DNA from: Zygnema circumcarinatum SAG 698-1b
Taxonomy: Eukaryota > Plantae > Zygnematophyceae
NCBI GenBank assembly: GCA_037447605.1
Contig: CM074814.1
Coordinates: 2,108,001 to 2,172,000 of the forward strand
Length of the DNA stretch: 64,000 nt
Direction: 5' to 3'
Part shown: in pieces, positions 24,263-49,876 of the stretch
Layout: every line of letters starts with the position of its first letter
Numbering within the stretch: position 1 is the stretch's first letter
Translations under genes and position numbers: made by a program
Notes under the pieces: generated by a model
Told to the model about the DNA's origin: nothing
What the model saw: only the letters and a program-made list of their open reading frames with translations
The model's database searches: none

Positions 24263-25024
24263 ACACTAACTCCAAATAAAGATACCGATCCTGCCAGCAC
24301 CCTCCTCCTGCCTGCTCCTCCTGCATACCCCCGCGTGCATCTCCCTCCCCCTTCAAACCCCCTTCATCCTCCTCCTCCTGCACCGCCTTTGCAAACCCTA
24401 ACCCTAATTTCTCCCTCCTGCCGCCTCCCTCAGCTTGCTTAGGAGCCGCTTCCAACCTTCCACCCCAATAAGGCGGAGGGACTATATTGAGCTTCTTTTC
24501 CTGTCACGACTGGGGCCAATCACAGCCTGCCATGGCAGCAGGGTTAACACGTGGCACGCCCTGGTTGGCCTTCGCTTCGAGAGAGTACTTACAGGGAGTC
24601 GTGGAAGCCTGCCTGGTGTATCCTTCGGCTCCATGTGGGGGCGCCGCAGTTAAGGTTTGCGACGCTCTACGAAACAGCGTGGCAGCAGTAAAATGGGAAA
24701 AAGCGTCGCATTCCATGCTCCAGTTTTACGCAGTTCCGTGACTGAGAACAGCTAATTTCCTACGTGGCATCCAGAAGGGGACGTTTTCTGCCACGCTGGC
24801 GCTCCCTCGGACAAAGGATAAACAGAACTGGTACGTGTCTCCGCCGTATGCAAATGACAACGAGTGCCTGCCTGTACTGATTTCGGACAAACCGTGTTCC
24901 GAGACAGGGAGGTTCTGGAACGGTCGCGTACGACCGCCGCCCTGAATATTCGCCACCCTCCAATAGGCGGTTGCCACGTGGCGGCATGACGTTGTCAGAA
25001 CCAAACTGATACCAGCTCACGCCC

Positions 25025-25520
25025 AAGGCTCTAGGCCATAGACCCTAGGGCCTAGACCCTAGACCCTCGGTCATAGGCCCTAAGCCTAGACCCTAGGCCC
25101 GCTATCATTGGATAAACATTAGGCCCTAGTCCCGAGGCCACAAACCTTCGACCCTAGACCCTCGATCATAGACCCTCAGTCATAGGCCCTACGCCATAGA
25201 CTCTAGGCCCTCTGTCATTGGATAAACTTTAGGCCCTAGGCCCTAGGCCCTAGGCCCTAAGCCCTAAGCCCTAAGCCCTAAGCCGCCCTAAGCCGCCCTA
25301 AGCCCTAAGCGTTAAGCCCTACGGTAGGCCTTTAAGCTCTAGGCCGTAGGCCCTACGCCCTGGCCCTAGCACCAGGGTCATACCCTAGGCCCTACGCCTT
25401 AATACACTAGGCCTTAAGGCTTTAGGCCCTAAGCCCTCGGTCCTAAGCCCTCGGTCCTAGGCCCTAGGCCCTAAGACCCTATGCCCTAAGACCCTAGCCC
25501 CTAGGACCCTAGACCTTAAC
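25025..25520. repeat. Degenerate telomere-like heptamer array (CCCTAGG/CCCTAAG/CCCTAGA)
   Basis: Dozens of 7-bp CCCTAxx units, purest at ~25234-25310. A higher-order block TCATTGGATAAAC occurs twice. Confidence 0.85.
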
Positions 25521-25850
25521 CCCAAAGGCGTATGGCGCAGCAAACAGAGTGAGTAAAAGTTCGGAGGGTTTTAGGAATTTCGCAACATGGCCATGGAGCG
25601 TCAAAGCATGCCAAAGTGAACCACTTTTTTCTTCCATGCCAACATTTGAACCGGAGCACTTTCCCAATACAGAAGCCATCACAACCTTCCTCACAACTGC
25701 GCCTCCTGCCTAAACTACACTCCCTCGCATTTCGGAAAACCTAATCTGTGAGGTGCCACCCCTCCTCCCTCTCCAGGCACTCACTAGTTACATCAATTTT
25801 CAGAAAAAAAAAAAAAGCAACTCCTAAGATTCAAGTGCTTAAGACTTAAC

Positions 25851-39477: not shown

Positions 39478-40004
39478 GGAAGGGGGAGAAAGAGAAAGTG
39501 AGAGATGGAGGAGAAGGAGGGATTGAAAGAGAGTGAGGAAGGGCAAGGAAAGAGCGCGAGCGAGAGTGGGTGAGAGGGAGAAGAGCAAGAGAGAGGAGCG
39601 AAGGAGAAAGGGAGGGAGGGAGAAGGAGAGAGAGCAAGAGAGGCAGAAGGGAGGGACGAGACTCGAAAAAACTGCGGGGGAGAGGGTTTTTAGGGGAAAA
39701 GGGTAACTTGAAGAGAGGAAGGGAGCGGTCGGGAAAGGGGAGAGAAAGTGAGGTAGAGAGAGAGAGAGAGAGAGAGTAAGAAAGAGGGAGGCGCAGGATT
39801 AGGGAAGGGAATGGAGAGTGGAGTGAGTGATATAAAAAACAATATGGAAAGGAGAGGAGCAAGTTGAGGTAGGTGGGGAAGAGAGTGGCGCGCGAGAGAG
39901 CGAGAGAGAGCGCGGGAGAGGGAGGCGGGAGAGGGAGCGGAGGCAAAAAGCGCCGGCGCCGGCGCCTTGGCCATTTCTCCATTGTGAAACTCGGCGAAGC
40001 CTCC

Positions 40005-40455
40005 GCCAATGGGAGTTTGACACGTGGCATACATGTGGCGTGTCTCCATTGGGTGTTGCTCTACAGCTATTTTTCGGGCGAATTTCCCCCGAAGCCGAAT
40101 TTCCCGAAAACCCAAAAAAAGGCGGTTCGCGGTTTGCCGAAATTTCGACTTCGCAGTTTCTGAGGGCCGTTCGGGCCGTGGCGGGCCAGCCATTGCCACA
40201 TGACGGCCTCTGATTAGCCGCTTTTGCCACGTGTCTTCCTGACATTGGCGCCTTTGGCTGTTCTACTTTCTTCGATGTTTTTGTGTTTGTTGTTTTGTAC
40301 TGTGTGGCCAATGATGGCACGCCACGTATACTGTAAGACCACTAATGACACATCACGTGTACAAAGCGGTCAATGACGACACGCCACGTGCATTGTGCGG
40401 CCAGTGGTGACATGTCACAAATACTCTGTGTCCGATGATGACACGCCACGTGTAC
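40005..40455. promoter_or_regulatory. Cluster of G-box and CCAAT-N9-(C/A)CACG elements upstream of VID27
   Basis: One exact match at 40308-40326 and near matches at ~40006, ~40035-40051, ~40229-40247, ~40370 and ~40432. Confidence 0.55.
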
Positions 40456-40790
40456 CGTATGGCCAATGTGACGTGTATTTTGTGTTCCTGTCGATGGAGA
40501 GGCTCGTCTTTGAAAAGCGGCTCGTCGTGGTTTCCCATGCTGGGTCTGTCCATGTCCATCCAAGACTGGTTTCACATTGCCTCGTTTTGCTAGAAGCCAA
40601 CAAAAACTTGAAATTGCATACATACCGTTGTAGTCATTCGTCAGCGGACGAGAAAGCAGACTTTCATTGTTGAATCACTTTAAGCCTTAAACAGACAAGG
40701 CGAGGGCCCTTCCCGTTCTCCTTCTTCTTCGGGTCCTTTGCCAAGCGCGGAACAGGAAAGCACAATAGCTAAATTTTTGAAATTTTAAAC

Positions 40791-40998
40791 CTAAAATCCA
40801 AAAGGGGGTAAGCCTATCTTGAGAAACGAATAAACAAGGGCTCCGGTGAAGATATAGCTGTCTCCTCTATCCAATATTCCACCATGTCCTGGAATCAACC
40901 TGCCGGAGTCCTTCACCCCAGCGTCTCTCTTCATCATAGATTCCGATAAATCACCAAATAAAGAAGCCAGGAAGATGAGCACCGCCATGGTCGCAGCA
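40791..40998 (-). pseudogene. Orphan last exon of a plastid-type phosphatidate cytidylyltransferase (CDS4/5-like)
   Basis: [43 protein letters not shown] is the CTP_transf_1 signature. A CAG acceptor precedes 40998. I found no upstream CDS exons (such as SPKKTWEG) in the window. Confidence 0.7.
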
Positions 40999-42055
40999 CT
41001 GCCATTCAGTTCAAGGCAGAGGTCGACTCAAAGGGTCTCAGTATGTTTAGGGTTCCACCGACTTGCCAGCATGCAAGAGTTCATTCGCTTTCGCAGTCTT
41101 TCACAAGCTGTCAAAAGTCAACATCACAAAGCATCAAGCATCAGTTCATCAGTACATTACTCATAAACACTTTCTTTTACTTCATCGCCCATACACAGTC
41201 CATACATTTACCGTACAGTCCCCGTACACATACCAACCACTGCACTACTCTCGACTCTCAAACAACACAATGTCCTGCAACCCGCAGCCTTCAGCATTCA
41301 TTCAGTCGTGGCAGCATTGTCGACTCCTGTAATGCACGCTCGCAGTTTCTGCAAGTGCAAAATCTGGAAGTCCAAAAACTTGAGACGAGTCCGCTCGAGC
41401 GAAAGCCGGGTTTCCGTAAGCTCGATGCGTAGTGAATTTGGGGAAACTTCACCATTGTCCTGCGCATCGCCGTTCTTTCGAAGTCTCTTAGGAAAGCAAA
41501 AAGAGAATAAGTAAAACACAGTAATTTTTCAATGCCAAATTAACGGCAAGCTCTGATTGAAGCACGAGCTACAAGATTTCTAAGATACGGTTGTTATATT
41601 ACGCAAGAATAATCTGAATTGAGTTGTGGATTTCTTCAGCAAATGCGTGCATGCGATAAAAAAATCATTGTTGAGGGACGAAAGCATGGCTGTAACTAAA
41701 AATACGGTATGCTGGAAACATACTTTGTTAAGAACTTCATTTACTGTGATGTATCCAGGATTGTGCAAAAGACACAGCAACTCACGTCAAAAAGATCAAA
41801 CTGCAGGAAAAAAATAGATTTCAATAAATTTTAAAAAACTTAATTTACCTCTGGAGAGGAAAATAATAATATTCTGAGCAGCATTGGTATACTTTGCAGC
41901 GATCTTATGACAATGTGTATTCGCTCTTGCGTCGTTTTAAGATTACAAAAAAAGGACAACATAAGAAATTGATGACAGTATCTTCAAGATTACATTCGAG
42001 AAACAGCAGAACGTTGCATAATAAAAGAGATAAGTATTGGTATTGAAGTCGCTAC

Positions 42056-43454
42056 CGCAAGAATGACAGCATTGTCGACTCCTGTGCTGCACGCTCCCGG
42101 TTCCCGCTTGAACTTAAGTTGGCCTTCAAAAAAATTGCTGCAAAACTCCGCGAGCGAAAGCTTCGCTTCCAAAATCTCGATGCGTCGCTGCGCCTGCAAG
42201 GATGAAGGATGTCCAGAAGGTTTCTTGATATAATAGTTTATAATTTTTCTACTTTTTTTCACGCATAGTTTGCACTAGGGAACATTTTAACTTCGCGCTT
42301 TGGTCGTGGAGAAGCCACAGCAACGGTCAAGCATAAAGCAGTCCAGTGTAAAACAAAACCTACAGTTACCTGCGCAACCTTTGCATCCCTTTCTTCCTTC
42401 TCGAACAGCAGCTTTGCCACCAGCTTAGAAGTCTCGGCTTGCTGGTTCGTCTCAACACGGCAAACCGACAGGACAACATAAGAAATTGATGACATTATCG
42501 TGAAGATTACACTCGAGAAACAGCAGAACAGTGCATAATATAAGGGATAAGTATTGGTATTGAAGTCTCTACCACAAGCTTCACAGCCGCCTCCACGATT
42601 TTGTCAACGTTAGGCTCCGACAGCCCTTTCACGGTACAGAGAAGCTGCACATATAACGCAAACACATCAATTCTAAGCCAGTTCTGTATTTACTACTGGT
42701 TAGTTCGCCTCCAACACAACGAAAATAGATTCTGCTGGCGGCCAGGCTATGTATTCAATAAAGTGGACTGCACCAGTGCTCTACTGTAATGTAGAATTAT
42801 TCTTGAAATTGCAAGCGGTCAAGCATGAACGTTTCTTCACCTCCTTTGGTAGCGCAAGTACTACCATGCAAGTGTAAATGCCAGCATCTTGCAGGTTTTT
42901 TACATCTTCAGCATTTATTCCTTGGGCGATGACTGTGCAAACAAACGTTCGTCAAATATACTTGGTTGCAGCAGGTCGATTTGAAATAGAGGCAAGAAAC
43001 GTCATGTTTTGCACATCAAACTTGAGGATCACACTCAACTTTCACAACCTGGAAAGTCGCACTGATTCATAACACAAAGCAGAGCTTGTGAAGGATGTTT
43101 ATATATTGTATCCTTACAAAAGGCACGCATCTTCTTGAATTAACTTGAAGACTCCAGGTAATCTAATAACATCGACTAGCGCCTGAAAGACCACTACGTT
43201 TGTCAAAAGATCCATACGAATATTCTTCGTCTTCAGACTCGTGAACATTTGATGCTCGCCGGTCCTCCAGGGAGGAACTGACTACTGCTTGAGACCTGCA
43301 GACAGAAACGTGCGAAAAAAGGCAATCAGCAAATGTTTTCACCTTCTGAAAATGAGGGAATCCTCAACAGTACCAAGGTCTAACTGAGCTTGCTTTCAAA
43401 CCAAGGGCAGAAAGAAAAAAATCTGCCAGCTCAAGCAAGGGAACGAGCATACAT
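42056..43454 (-). CDS. Chimeric gene: divergent DMC1 N-terminal (HhH) domain fused to novel helical exons, no RecA ATPase domain; 3' end uncertain (may extend to ~41300)
   Basis: Probable split start AT|G (43454-43453), then exons 43295-43198, 42932-42841 and 42644-42573, giving ...[67 protein letters not shown]. Plant DMC1 reads [57 protein letters not shown]. Non-DMC1 exons follow at ~42450-42370 and 42193-42056. Confidence 0.75.
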
Positions 43455-43764
43455 GTCGACGTCTTTCTGGAGCTCTTCCAAGAAAATTACTAGATAAAAA
43501 GAATGCCTGCTCTGCCTCTTTGGTGCTTGCAGATAGCAGCCTCCCTCGCCCTCGCCCTCGCCCTTGAGCTAATAGACCGCCTCCCTCGCAGCAACAGCAG
43601 CAGCAGCAGCGGCGCCTTGCAGGGCAACTATATCCTTTGGCGCGGAAAAGCGCACGCTCAGCGGTTCAATTTTTTCGCGCGCCCAAGAGTTTGCAGAGGC
43701 AGGCGACGCCGAAGCAAAGAGATGTCTGGTAATAGTTATTCTTTGCATTTTTCTCACAAAGCTA

Positions 43765-44285
43765 ACTCTCTCTCTCTCCCTCTCTCTCTCTGTCTCCCTT
43801 TCTAGCCTTTTCTTTCCTCTCCCGCCCTCTCCTTCTTCCTCTTCCGCTCTCGCTTCCCCGTTCTCTCTCTTTCGCTCCTCTCCCTCCCCCTCCTCTCTCG
43901 TCCTCACCGGCTCTCCCTCCCACTCTAACTTTGCCTTGATCACCTCTCCTCCCACTTCTTCTAATACCTCTCCTCTCTCTCCATCTCTCTCTCGCTCTCT
44001 TCCCATCTGCTCTCCCTCTCTCTCTACCTTTTTCCTTGATCTCCTCTCCTCCCTCTTTCTAATTCCTCTCCCTCTCCCTCCTCTCTCGACCTCACCTGCT
44101 CTCCTTCCCTCGCTTCCTTTTTCCTCGATCTCCTCTACTCTCTCTTTCTAATTCCTCTTCCTCTCTCTCCGCTCCCTCTTCTCTCTTTCCCACCTGCTCT
44201 CCCTCCCTCCCTCCCTTGTCCTTGATCTTCTCTCCTCCCTCTCCTAATTCCTTTCCCTTCCTCCCCTCTCCCTCCCTCACCATCC
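43765..44285. repeat. ~520-bp polypyrimidine (CT-rich) low-complexity tract
   Basis: Almost entirely C/T on the + strand, upstream of the DMC1-like gene. Confidence 0.9.
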
Positions 44286-45588
44286 AAGAAAAAAATGGGT
44301 TTAATTGGTTTCAGATTTACAAGGAGAAAGACTTTAGAAGTTTTGGAGTTCGTCAGTTTCTTGCTCGTCCGTTTTTTTGGAATGCAAGCGGGTAGTGGGT
44401 TCATCGGTACCCGGTCGAGTTTTGAATTATTTCTCGTTCTAAGTGCAAGTGTTGCTCTTCATTGCTCTTCGCCGAAGCACCGCTTCCCGGTACTGCAAGG
44501 CCTTCTAGAACTCAACCAGTCAGTTTACTTTTTTCTTCTTCAATGCTCATGCTTTCTGCTTTTTTTACGACATGAGGGGTTAAGAAAAAGAGAAAATGGC
44601 ATTGAACGCACGATGCGCATATACCGCGCATTGGAACCAATACTCTCTCTCTCGAAAAAGAGCGAGCGATAATTTACGAGGGTTGAGTACATAGCTAGAG
44701 GCCTATGGGGACAGAAAAGAAGGTTCGAACATGGAAATCCAAAATGTCTACCCGTTCTATTCCTAGATCAAGCTTTCTATTAATAATACACTTCTGTACA
44801 AGTGGGGTCTGTTCTTTGCAGTTATTCCATTCAGTCTCTTTCCCAAAGAACAAGAGGGAGTCAGACCCTTCCTCCCTGAACTACCTAAGCTATCTGCAGC
44901 TACTTTTTCGGCTGCAAGAATTGGTTGTACACAATTGAACTGCTTTGCATTCAAAGAATTTCAACACACGCAATTTCAACACCTTAACATTATTGTAGTG
45001 GTGCAAAGTAGGGCAGCCTCTCCCCAAAACTGTTGATGCTTCATGGATTCCATTGAAGATCTCATCAGGTCAATGAAATGCCTGAAGTTAGCCACCCCGA
45101 GGCGAAGTATGTGATTCGGTAATCGATAAACGAGTTTCCAGCAGGTTCGGTGTATTGCTCGAACTCAGATCCAAGCTCGCTCAAGACATCCCTGTTCCCC
45201 CATGACCAGTTTCAAGGTCAGTTCAATGATCTGAAGCGGATCTCAAGAAGGAGGGAGGGATGGGGGGAAGGGAGTAAGATCAATAGCATTGAACTCAAGT
45301 TCAGAAAACAGACTCAGATCGACTCACCCAATGAACACTCGTCCGTGAATAGCCGCAGAAATCATCAACTTCTTCGCCTGCAAAGAAAAATAACCTATTC
45401 CAGTCAGAAGTGGAATCTTGAAACCACTTCGACAAGGCATCAAGGAAATACTTCACACTCAGAGTCCATTCTAGGGGGAAAAAAATAGCATACAGCATCA
45501 GCTGCATGTCTGTCTTTCTTCACTGTTATGCAAGAGCTAAAGATCCGGATCACTACTTTCCGGGCATCAGGGATTGCAGAAATTTACC

Positions 45589-46787
45589 TGAAGCACTGCC
45601 ACACCCTCTACCACTGGAGAGTACTCGGATGGTAACTTTATTGACGTTTTTGACAATGTGAATGTGCGTCCCAGGACTGTCCCAGAGACGCTTCGAAAAG
45701 TCAAAGTAACATCATCCGGCCTGAATGAGAATCCCCCACTTGAGTTTGTGTTCACGATCCCTCCTGCATGGCGACAGTACCAAATGAACTTCATTCAACT
45801 GTAGCACAAAAGCCACTCTGCCTTCACAAACGATGCTAAGTATCCGTAGTGTAGAAGTGTAAACGCTCTGATCAACACAAAAATGCAGCATATTCAAAAC
45901 TCTACAGTAACACATGACTAGCAAGGGAGATTTTTGGCAAATAACGATGTAAGTAGTGTACCTTTAAGTAAAGCTGTAACGCCAACAGCTGCAATAGAGA
46001 TCAGAACATTGTTCGCTTCCGAGTCGTACAAGAGAAAAGTGAGCGAGGGGTCGTCGATGCCTCCGGGAGAAGTGAATGAGTAAGCTCCGGATATCCATTT
46101 CAGCTGAGATTCTTGAAGAGTCTGAGTTCCAAAACCAGCATAGTTTCTTCGAGTAAGTGAAACATTTCAAGGAATAACAAACGAGATGTCAATAAACGGA
46201 GATATTCGATTCCAACAATCTCAGTGCTCAGTCTATTTCTCATCTCAAATGAAAGAAGCACAATGGCCCTGCATACAACTGGCAAAGGTAAAATACATAG
46301 TTTGCCTAGAGGGCGAAACGAAGACAACAGTTCCTTTGCGAAGATGAAGGGAAAAATGCCTGCTGTACTTTTTTTTCACCCGGAACAAAGAGAGAGTGTA
46401 AGGAACAGAGTGAGAGTACACTGCATATCTGCATATCATATCGTTATCTCTCAAACTATATACCTAAAGAGTGTCAATAAGGACAATGAAAATTTATCGT
46501 AGCACATATCTTACATACCGCATAGCAAAAAAACATACCGTAATCCTTCCCGATCCTCTGTTCCGCAGCTGCAGGGCCACCACGTCCAGCACAGTGGAGC
46601 CGGGAACTATGGTTGGAAGCTTTGGAAGCTCAGCGGCTATGCGCTGCTCCCGAGTGGCGCCAAACTGATAGGCCGTGCGGAACAGACTCGATTCTAAGCT
46701 GACAGAAGCGCCCTGCAGCCTGCCAGCCATGGCAAGAAGGAGCACGGCCGCCAGAGATACTACAGGAAGGAGCCTCCAATACGCCAT
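45589..46787 (-). CDS. Unknown secreted protein with a signal peptide, at least 3 exons; 3' end unresolved
   Basis: MAYWRLLPVVSLAAVLLLAMAGRLQGA looks like a signal peptide. Exons ~46787-46539, ~46103-45962 (LKWISGAYSFTSPGG..) and ~45764-45589 (GIVNTNSSGGFSFRP..) splice in frame at GT-AG sites. Confidence 0.6.
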
Positions 46788-47456
46788 AGCTACTCCTTGG
46801 CTCCTCCTGATAAAGAAAACACTCTCCCTCTTGATCTCTCACTATTTGCTCCTTTTCCTCGCTCCTCCTATTCCCCTATCTGTTATCTTGGTGTGCTTCC
46901 GTCTATTTCTTCGTTCTTTCGCCTCTGCCTCCTACCTCGCCTACCTCTCCTTCCTTGCCTCTCCCTCCTCTCCTCTCTCTCCTTTCTCTCTCTCTTCTCT
47001 TCTCCTTCTCCCTCCCTCCCTCGTGGTCCGCCAGTTTCCATTGCTGTGCGCGTCCCAGCTGGCAGCGCGCGGCGCTTCTAAGAGGACCACGCGGCGTGCT
47101 GTGATTGGCCACGAGGAAACATGGGACCGAAACGGACAAATTGACGACAAACCGTACGAATCGGCCTTCCAAGTAAGCCGTACATACCCTTGTTTGACTG
47201 CGCCAACGTGCACCAATCAGAAGCCGACTTTGATGCGTCCGTACTGTATCTTGTACGACCTTGCCAAAAAGTGAGCGGCAATATTTGTACGAAACCGTAC
47301 ATGCGGTTGGGAGTTGTTGGGCGGCAGGATGTTCGTACAGTGTGGGGTTAGTGACCGTTGTACGGCCTCAGTATCGTACGGCAGAAAACGGCATGGCGTA
47401 CGATTTCTTGGCGTATCCGAGGAAGATCTCACCGAGGGACGATTCTATTTAGGGAA

Positions 47457-48896
47457 GGAAAATTCTATTCTCACACCTTTTTTGTCTACGCACAGACCTC
47501 TTTTCGCTGGGCAGATTTTAAAATAGACAAAAAAGGAACACACCTTTCACACCTTTTTTTTTTCACTTTTTTTTTCACATCTTTTTGGAATCGATACACG
47601 CTACTAGTCCTGAGCGGCCGAGCGCCGTGAGACCTTTTTCTGTCGGGCAGATTTACTCCTTATCATTTATTTTCAGAGAAAAAAANNNNNNNNNNCATAC
47701 GTTTAAAAACAGTACTCAAACAGCGATTGGTAATTACTTTCGTGAGTATTGATTCTGTTTCTGGTTCCATATGGGATTTTTCTTAGATCGACTCCCCAGC
47801 CCATGGGAAAATGAGCCAAAAAGGTCAATCCAAAATCCAAACCGTACCAGAATCCGCATCAGAAAGTCCAGTACGAACATGTACGAAAATGGCCCGACAT
47901 TTCCCTAAGGAAAATTCTATTCTCACACCTTTTTTGTCTACACACAGGCCTCTTTTCGCCGGGCAGATTTTAAAATAGCACAAAAAAAGAACACACCTTT
48001 CACACCTTCTCACCTTTTCTTTTTCACCTTTTTTTTCCCACCTTTTTGAAATCGATACACACCTTTCTCCATCGGGCAGATTTACCCCTTCTTGTTTTTT
48101 TCAAAGAAAAAAATATCGGCCTGCCCGAATCCACTCGGAGCAGAAGATCCGTCCGCCACGAGATCGTTCGCGGGTGGCCGTCCTTCACACGTGCAATAAT
48201 TTTCCGCCGTCGATATTCACGCAGATCGCACCATGGCAGATCACCGTTCGATCAGAAGCCGGGCTCTGTCCCACGTGTCCCACCCAAGCCGGCTCCAAGG
48301 ACCGTACAAAAGGCGTACGCCCGCAGCTTCGAGGAAAGTCAAAAAACGTAATAATTAAAGTTGAGTGCCTGTACCAATCACAGTTTGCCACGTCTAAAAC
48401 GAGCACGCGGCAGATGGTGATTGGTTCAAGCTCGCAATGTAAGGAATTTAGACTTTCCTCGAAGCTGTGACCGTACGAGTTGTGTACGGTCGAGCCTGCT
48501 CGGGTGGGACACGTGGGCGTGTGCCATTCGCTGGAACCGAGCCCGGCTGCCGATCGAACGGTGATCTGCCGTGGTGCGATCTGCTCTAGAATCGACGGTG
48601 TATAGATTCTGCACGTGTGAAGGACGGCCACCCGCGAACGATCTCGTGGCGGACGGATCTTCTGCTCCGAGTGGATTCGGGCAGGCCGATATTTTTTTCT
48701 TTGAAAAAAACAAGAAGGGGTAAATCTGCCCGATGGAGAAAGGTGTGTATCGATTTCAAAAAGGTGGGAAAAAAAAGGTGAAAAAGAAAAGGTGAGAAGG
48801 TGTGAAAGGTGTGTTCTTTTTTTGTGCTATTTTAAAATCTGCCCGGCGAAAAGAGGCCTGTGTGTAGACAAAAAAGGTGTGAGAATAGAATTTTCC
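47457..48896. mobile_element. Non-autonomous foldback (MULE/hAT-like) element with 8-bp TSD TTAGGGAA; contains an assembly gap
   Basis: Termini GGAAAATTCTATTCTCAC... and ...GTGAGAATAGAATTTTCC. TTAGGGAA at 47449-47456 and 48897-48904. Long inverted arms close in on ~48350-48445. Confidence 0.8.
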
Positions 48897-49174
48897 TTAG
48901 GGAAATGTCGGGCCATTTTCGTACATGTTCGTACTGGACTTTCTGATGCGGATTCTGGTACGGTTTGGATTTTGGATTGACCTTTTTGGCTCATTTTCCC
49001 ATGGGCTGGGGAGTCGATCTAAGAAAAATCCCATATGGAACCAGAAACAGAATCAATACTCACGAAAGTAATTACCAATCGCTGTTTGAGTACTGTTTTT
49101 AAACGTATGATAATGGATGTTTTTGCTTTTCAGAGTAAAATGTACATATAAGTTTTTTTAAATCGAATTTTGGC

Positions 49175-49876
49175 GGGGGCGACTATTTACAGTGTACTTT
49201 ATTCTGAATGTAGTGTACGATTTCGCGGGGCAGCAAAAAAAGGTTTTTTTTGGCGAAAAATGTTGTTTCACACTTCTCAGAATAGATACAGACATTTTTT
49301 CGTCGGATGTACGGATGGTGATTCGAAATGTACGAAGCGCGCGCGTCTACAAGGTATAAGGGCGCAACACGTGGAGCGACATGATTGGTCGCGGCAGCAT
49401 ATGACGTGGCAAGTATGTTTGGGACCATGACGTGACGAAACGAGACGCGAAAAAAGTGGAGTCCGCGGACGGCAGTCGGAAATGGCGGGAATTAAAACTG
49501 ACAAAAAAAGATAGGGCACATAACGTAGCGTGTTTCAGGAAAAATCTGTCAGTTTGAATTCCCGCCATTTCCGACTGCCGTCCGCGGACTCCACTTTTTT
49601 CGAGTCTCGTTTCGTCACGTCACGGTACCAAATATACTTGCCACGTCATATGTTGCCGCGACCAATCATGTCGCTCCACGTGTTGCGCCCTTATACCTTG
49701 TAGACGCGCGGGTTTCGTACATTTCAAATCACCCTCCGTACATCCGACGAAAAAAGGTCTGTATCTATTCTGAGAAGTGTGAAACGACATTTTTCGCCAA
49801 ACAAAAACCTTTTTTTCGCTGCCCTGCGAAATCGTACACTACATTCAGAAAACGTACACTGTAAATAGTCGCCCCC
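49175..49876. mobile_element. Non-autonomous foldback element with ~330-bp inverted arms and 8-bp TSD ATTTTGGC
   Basis: Termini GGGGGCGACTATTTACAGTGTAC and GTACACTGTAAATAGTCGCCCCC. Arms 49175-49503 and 49546-49876. ATTTTGGC at 49167-49174 and 49877-49884. Confidence 0.9.

Follow-up and report, generated by a model that had tools for sequence, protein, structure and literature searches.

The window, by which we mean the whole 64,000-nt stretch of DNA analysed here, includes genes for a WNK kinase and a CHASE-type histidine kinase as well as a VID27-like gene, which point to a streptophyte alga. On its minus strand, in the interval from an unrelated gene whose end is near 44766 to the start of the VID27-like gene near 39480, lies a chimera in which the promoter and 5′ exons of DMC1 are followed by unrelated exons. 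The initial annotation had described minus-strand exons with GT-AG ends in a single open frame, and a sequence check of the window confirmed this. It had placed the unit at 42056-43454; the exons are there, but the unit also includes a relic of exon 5 (41762-41724) and a further last exon, N3 (41459-41298). The features are listed below, with the evidence for each in brackets.

43453..43796, minus strand: copied DMC1 promoter and 5′ UTR exon 1 (RNA contig starts, splice joint; upper end approximate)
43198..43295, minus strand: DMC1 exon 2 (E2), 98 nt, acidic N-terminal tail ending in FDK (RNA contigs, sequence)
42933..43197, minus strand: intron 2 (main RNA contigs of runs X7, X9 and X14 retain it)
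42841..42932, minus strand: DMC1 exon 3 (E3), 92 nt, in land-plant phase (weak RAD51/DMC1 N-terminal match, exon comparison)
42573..42644, minus strand: DMC1 exon 4 (E4), 72 nt, helix-hairpin-helix (human DMC1 match, exon comparison)
42470..42587, minus strand: repeat copy A, the last 15 nt of E4 and the first 103 nt of DMC1 intron 4 (internal repeat search)
42370..42441, minus strand: novel exon N1, 72 nt, helical, starting QAETSK (depth arithmetic)
42056..42193, minus strand: novel exon N2, 138 nt (RNA contigs from runs X14 and X9)
41953..42070, minus strand: repeat copy A′, where the end of E4 and the start of intron 4 recur (internal repeat search)
41724..41762, minus strand: relic of DMC1 exon 5, 39 nt, NPGYITVNEVLNK (land-plant exon-5 match, paralog splice)
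41298..41459, minus strand: novel exon N3, the last of the unit, with 53 codons and a stop (RNA contigs, repeat search)
40561..41001, minus strand: CDP-diacylglycerol synthase 3′ fragment, the last ~70 codons and 3′ UTR (PF01148, E=4e-25, model positions 203-263 only)

DMC1-derived and recruited exons

In the copied promoter, two GCGC motifs of E2F type occur, one near 43680 and one near 43643, and its likeness to paralogs stops at about 43713, where loose contig ends lie. RNA contigs begin about 46 nt beyond 43750, and exon 1 terminates in a split start codon (AT/G, 43454-43453). Downstream, the N-terminal helix-hairpin-helix domain of DMC1 is present when followed exon by exon: in exon-level searches, E4 matched human DMC1 (E=3e-4) and E3 gave only a weak match to RAD51/DMC1 N-terminal domains. 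A degenerate pattern derived from E4 retrieved 47 metagenome loci, nine of which are land-plant DMC1 genes; a vertebrate-type DMC1 one residue off the human chain (L004) was left out after the first screen. Exons 3, 4 and 5 of the nine land-plant genes measure 92, 72 and 39 nt, and E3 and E4 of the chimera are identical to them in length and phase, with protein identities of 20/30 and 15/24. Searching the window by tblastn with two full-length DMC1 proteins returned matches to E3 and E4 only, so that the RecA core, with its Walker A and B motifs and L1 and L2 loops, is absent from the whole window. The exon lengths, phases and identities, together with full-length proteins that match nothing else in the window, confirm the two central claims of the initial annotation, a DMC1 N-terminal domain and the lack of any RecA motif downstream of it. 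RAD51 was ruled out as the donor by exon structure, since the exon lengths, phases and exon-5 sequence are those of land-plant DMC1 and paralog mRNA reads NGLLMRTKK. A processed (retro) pseudogene was ruled out as well, with introns 1-5 present and about 90% like those of paralogs.

The core was originally thought to have been replaced by novel exons. Unrelated exons are indeed joined to the DMC1 part, but they were inserted within intron 4, ahead of an exon 5 that is dead, as is evident from the exon-5 relic downstream of them. This relic is the best of about 128,000 window positions against land-plant exon 5 (at the DNA level for both references, at the protein level for one of the two), and a paralog RNA contig joins 42573 to 41762, that is, E4 to the same 39-nt piece. 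Its GT donor is intact, its acceptor has changed from AG to AC, and its polymerisation motif YITG now reads YITV. The FxxA polymerisation motif is found only as this relic behind the AC acceptor and has no place in the product.

The repeats mark how the insert is bounded. Copies A and A′ are 118 nt long and 89% alike, with 94 of 103 nt identical in the intron part; the likeness of A extends to about 42447, which forms the junction to non-DMC1 DNA, and A′ provides the N2 splice donor, with a GCTGT microhomology at the N2/E4 junction. A paralog DNA contig that lacks the insert has its joint at 42045-42569. Within N3, the stretch 41430-41309 is a 70% copy of N2 (a 122-nt repeat), and beyond N3 the 3′ UTR runs to about 41190-41100. 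Two further candidates did not reach significance: an exon-6 relic at 41459-41430 (RRTMVKF, in another frame) and a deleted N1 copy preceding N3.

When a profile of N2 and N3 was compared with 1.84 billion representatives, the only match was to one repetitive 2398-aa protein, at 14 positions. Pfam (N3 excluded), the ESM Atlas and exact look-ups, all libraries without this organism, gave no homologue of the novel exons; six window proteins are also missing from the searched collection, so these blanks say little.

Transcripts of the chimera and its paralogs

Transcription was followed in three runs from three studies (X7, X9 and X14), identified as RNA by the E1-E2 splice (joint 43293-43451), which they contain at depth 20-27 and which is missing in the DNA run X3. 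The main 5′ contigs of all three pass the E2 donor by 84-142 nt into intron 2, beyond the in-frame stop at 43165-43163 that limits the product to a 44-aa peptide. Paralogs splice E2 to E3 in the very runs that retain intron 2 at the chimera, and no contig of X7, X9 or X14 holds the E2-E3 splice of the chimera. Its E3 is missing from X9 and X14, and depth arithmetic shows it joined to retained intron 2 in X7. This arithmetic matches the printed bins within 0.05, with some paralog boundaries taken from printed side lengths.

Splices joining parental and recruited exons occur, as the chimeric model had anticipated. One X9 contig extends 145 letters past N2, a length of 1+72+72, and this remainder together with nine depth bins points to an E4-N1-N2 splice in that run. 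The N1 bin has a depth of 8.05, against predictions of 8.04 for an acceptor at 42441 and 8.92 for one at 42450, which rules out the GAG acceptor before 42450 and favours the CAG before 42441; N1 accordingly starts with QAETSK and not, as first proposed, with TNQQAETSK. N2 has two alternative continuations. The X9 transcript reads through after N2 to the stop at 41992-41990 (a 179-aa frame), and X14 shows the N2-N3 splice directly, at low depth (a 211-aa frame). X7 contains N3 and lacks both N1 and N2, so that the 3′ forms differ among all three RNA runs. No contig of the chimera locus splices in the exon-5 relic, and none represents a full-length, fully spliced mRNA, among contigs that drop minor isoforms and come from samples whose stages are not on record.

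Other DMC1 5′ copies are present in the DNA run X3. One loose end in that run, at 43279, has E3-like letters at most 112 nt from E2, which suggests another DMC1 5′ copy that has a deletion or lacks intron 2. In X14, low-depth paralog RNA apparently uses part of intron 4 (41849-41930, minus strand) as an exon between E3-like and E5-like letters; from this case, other DMC1 copies may likewise have taken up cryptic exons.

Divergence and the state of the DMC1 domain

Paralogous DNA contigs differ from the locus by 9.4% from intron 1 to E3, 7.8% in E4 and 9.1% from intron 4 to intron 5. Introns about 90% identical to those of paralogs argue for a recent duplication at the DNA level, and we regard the copy as a young one that took its introns with it. 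Its parent lies elsewhere and is probably intact, judging by spliced E3-E4-E5 mRNA with the canonical NGLLMRTKK. Overall, exons differ from paralogs by 8-12% and introns by 9-12%, and E2 differs from its spliced paralog at 11 of 96 nt. Exons that have diverged at least as fast as introns give no sign of purifying selection. The view of the locus as a retained gene under constraint does not fit these values, nor does it fit the retention of intron 2 with a stop after codon 44; dN/dS, on a small sample, was not below 1, the result that the initial annotation had named as speaking against a retained gene. Neither of the other two results it had named, absent chimeric splicing and a misassembly, was obtained.

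The divergence of the recruited exons is of another kind. Between N2 and N3, dN is 0.46 and dS 0.18, compared with 0.09 for the duplicated intron (9 of 103 nt), giving a dN/dS of 2.6 (one-sided p 0.03-0.08); 29 of the 36 changes fall at codon positions 1 and 2. The proportion of replacement differences, pN 0.34, exceeds the intron value of 0.087 (p=2e-5), and pS, at 0.16, does not differ from it. Across the E3/E4 join, the spliced paralog differs at 13 of 29 nt and in 8 of 10 codons; a hand count gives about 11 replacement changes to 2 silent ones, in a stretch that is visible because it is divergent and whose density of change is therefore biased. Positive selection on the chimera is possible, and the N2-N3 figures speak for fast protein change only if these two exons arose together with A and A′. 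Both the 179- and the 211-aa frames are still open, and a neutral copy retains an open DMC1 part in only 4-19% of simulations, making the survival of the frame mildly unlikely under neutrality.

We then compared the domain with 20 distinct reference domains, obtained with a search pattern that permitted P and N at positions 69-70; none of the references has either. The chimera carries G36E, K40N and K58E and a diverged 3′ end in E3, and A69P and K70N in E4, where K64, G65 and K73 are retained. K40, A69 and K70 (RAD51 numbering) are invariant in all 20 references, and the net charge of the domain is -2, compared with +1 to +9 in the references. The conserved basic surface (K40, K64, K70 and K73) is therefore no longer complete; the hydrophobic core and the KGLSE.VDKI scaffold are retained. 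In RAD51, K64 and K70 touch nucleosomal DNA, and on its own the domain has only a weak affinity for DNA (PMC10990931); filaments require the FxxA motif (PMC12409439). The initial annotation had suggested a DNA-binding adaptor or a modulator of recombinase filaments. With K40, A69 and K70 lost and the charge reversed, DNA binding becomes unlikely, and with FxxA confined to a dead exon that is spliced out, such an adaptor would be without both its surfaces.

Origin of the locus and competing explanations

We consider the locus to be a transcribed partial duplicate with recruited exons and a disabled DMC1 domain, a reading to which we give a probability of about 0.55. A recent partial duplication at the DNA level would have brought a copy of the promoter of DMC1 here, together with exons 1-5 and the introns between them, and would have ended in non-DMC1 DNA (N3); in a second, local rearrangement, another N segment would have been placed before exon 5, along with a repeat of the end of E4 and the first part of intron 4. 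Transcription would be driven by the inherited promoter, and splice sites, inherited or cryptic, would link E4 with N1 and N2 and in some transcripts with N3 as well. The DMC1 domain appears to be in the course of being disabled, with intron 2 mostly retained, the exon-5 acceptor lost and conserved lysines gone, and the locus would be a transcribed chimeric pseudogene or proto-gene from which hardly any full-length protein, if any, is made. Selection may have favoured part of these disabling changes, since a core-less N-terminal domain with a polymerisation motif could poison DMC1/RAD51 filaments. The anatomy, the age relative to paralogs, the transcription, the splices and the residue losses were observed as described above; from them we infer the order of events, the low protein output and the absence of function. 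This reading is supported by the expectation that constrained DMC1 exons should differ far less than introns, yet they do not. It is opposed by the open frames, given how few neutral simulations keep the DMC1 part, and by an excess of replacements over the intron clock that simple decay would not produce, provided that N2 and N3 arose with A and A′.

These last two points would be expected of a functional young chimeric gene under positive selection, which we regard as possible and clearly less probable than decay. Splicing of intron 2 would be confined to the sexual stage and would yield a protein of 179 or 211 aa; with the same tentativeness, its helical DMC1 domain would have been retooled as a protein-binding module with N1-N2 as a helical or coiled-coil tail. 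An open frame over 6-7 exons, chimeric splices in RNA, a replacement rate between N2 and N3 four times that of the intron and the preserved core and scaffold of the domain are all consistent with such a gene, as is the precedent of Hun and fog-2, functional sex-related partial duplicates with recruitment (PMC3449122). However, the E2-E3 splice that this protein needs is in no contig of the chimera, although paralogs from those runs show it. It may also be that N2 and N3 are older paralogous DNA, in which case the rate signal disappears, and N1 has no significant match beside N3. The heptad pattern of N1-N2 reaches no more than a moderate level (50% at a/d), and the N exons lack a homologue in the libraries searched. 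A bolder form of the same idea, which we hold to be doubtful, is that new genes arise again and again in this alga from the promoter and 5′ exons of DMC1 and that the chimera is one of them, a new meiotic protein under positive selection: intron 2 would be removed only at the sexual stage, the domain would have lost the residues that bind DNA and filaments, and the duplicated tail exons would have diversified at four times the rate of the neighbouring intron.

Two further explanations are improbable to a similar degree. In the first, the N-terminal domain would bind DNA or nucleosomes, or join recombinase filaments, and the new tail would recruit partners and so modulate meiotic recombination. 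The inherited DMC1 promoter, the retained K64, G65 and K73 and the existence of an E4-N1 splice would suit this role, but K40N, K58E, K70N, the reversed charge and the retained intron 2 would not, and the polymerisation exon is both altered and excluded, which would leave a lone domain of the kind that in RAD51 binds DNA weakly. In the second, the DMC1 and CDP-diacylglycerol-synthase pieces would be the cargo of a Pack-type transposon or Helitron, transcribed incidentally. Fragments of two genes, unlike in age (90% and 95% identity), do adjoin here, with multi-copy DNA on both flanks; against this, we found no terminal inverted repeats, target-site duplication or Helitron ends around 40200-44800, only GA-rich tracts, the ORF list holds no transposase, and both fragments may stem from one donor neighbourhood. 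An assembly artefact, with the RecA exons truly following exon 4, has a negligible probability despite the 118- and 122-nt repeats inside the unit, as these are only 89% and 70% alike, six DNA runs from three studies hold 86-90% of the locus words, and DNA contigs bear out the assembly, one being identical to 41704-42674 across both junctions and others covering 42799-43534 and 41103-41575.

The partial duplicate favoured here belongs to a known class, that of partial duplicates with recruitment or chimeric duplicates, which are common among young duplicates (PMC3449122), and it is not a functional member of the DMC1 family, having neither core nor FxxA. The features that place it in this class are a DNA-level partial copy with introns, about 90% identical to paralogous contigs, a parent elsewhere that probably produces the spliced E3-E4-E5 mRNA, and transcripts in which parental and recruited exons are joined. 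Drosophila Hun and C. elegans fog-2 are likewise DNA-level partial copies of germ-line genes that complete their frames with recruited sequence, and they are functional (PMC3449122); for the present chimera, function, fixation and a protein product are at most putative. With land-plant DMC1 it shares the promoter-proximal exons 1-5 in lengths and phases (92, 72 and 39 nt) and 58-65% of the protein encoded by E3 and E4; unlike that gene it lacks the ATPase core, Walker motifs and DNA-binding loops, its exon 5 is dead and its tail is unrelated. N-terminal-only DMC1 models in Fragaria, Brassica carinata, Melastoma, Paspalum and Turnera also stop after exon 4 or 5 without a RecA core, but their domains are near-canonical and their tails short and intron-derived, and they may be annotation fragments. 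A core-less DMC1 fragment that kept exon 5 would resemble BRCA2 BRC repeats and other FxxA mimics in exposing an FxxA-type motif able to cap filaments. Here exon 5 is not spliced in and the small residue is now valine, so this mimicry has been lost. In the literature, we found no report of the locus or of a DMC1 N-terminal chimera.

If it is a decaying partial duplicate, the locus would offer a clear example of a fragment of an essential meiotic gene that, once copied, was transcribed, recruited exons and was then defused, in a genome with several DMC1 copies of this kind, and DMC1 expression values in this alga would mix those of the parent and its copies. A functional gene would instead mean that an alga closely related to land plants has made a new meiotic protein out of the N-terminal domain of a recombinase, a rare case that would directly test what this poorly understood domain is capable of in the absence of its core.

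The CDP-diacylglycerol synthase fragment lies outside the reading frame of the chimera and is about 95% identical to an expressed parent elsewhere. One RNA contig of that parent continues into a promoter module like 43713-43663, which suggests that the parent may adjoin a DMC1-type promoter. Short multi-copy stretches flank the unit at 43663-43750, which contains E2F-like GCGC, and at 40500-40664, with DNA depths of 4-10x single copy. Further out, CT/GA-rich tracts at 43759-44278 and 39480-39950 lie in opposite orientation and are about 71% alike over 77 nt; we treated them as low-complexity promoter tracts. Upstream of the VID27-like gene, at 40298-40476, a 31-nt unit with a G-box-like CACGTG core is repeated in tandem, with five to six copies. 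A multi-exon gene at 44766-46799 (minus strand), absent from the long-ORF list, probably encodes a secreted or membrane protein with a signal-peptide-like start. Adjacent fold-back elements at 47455-49109 and 49202-49850, with inverted arms of 578 nt (97%) and 269 nt (94%), resemble MITE or foldback elements, and a degenerate telomere-like CCCTAG(G/A) array lies internally at 25022-25523.
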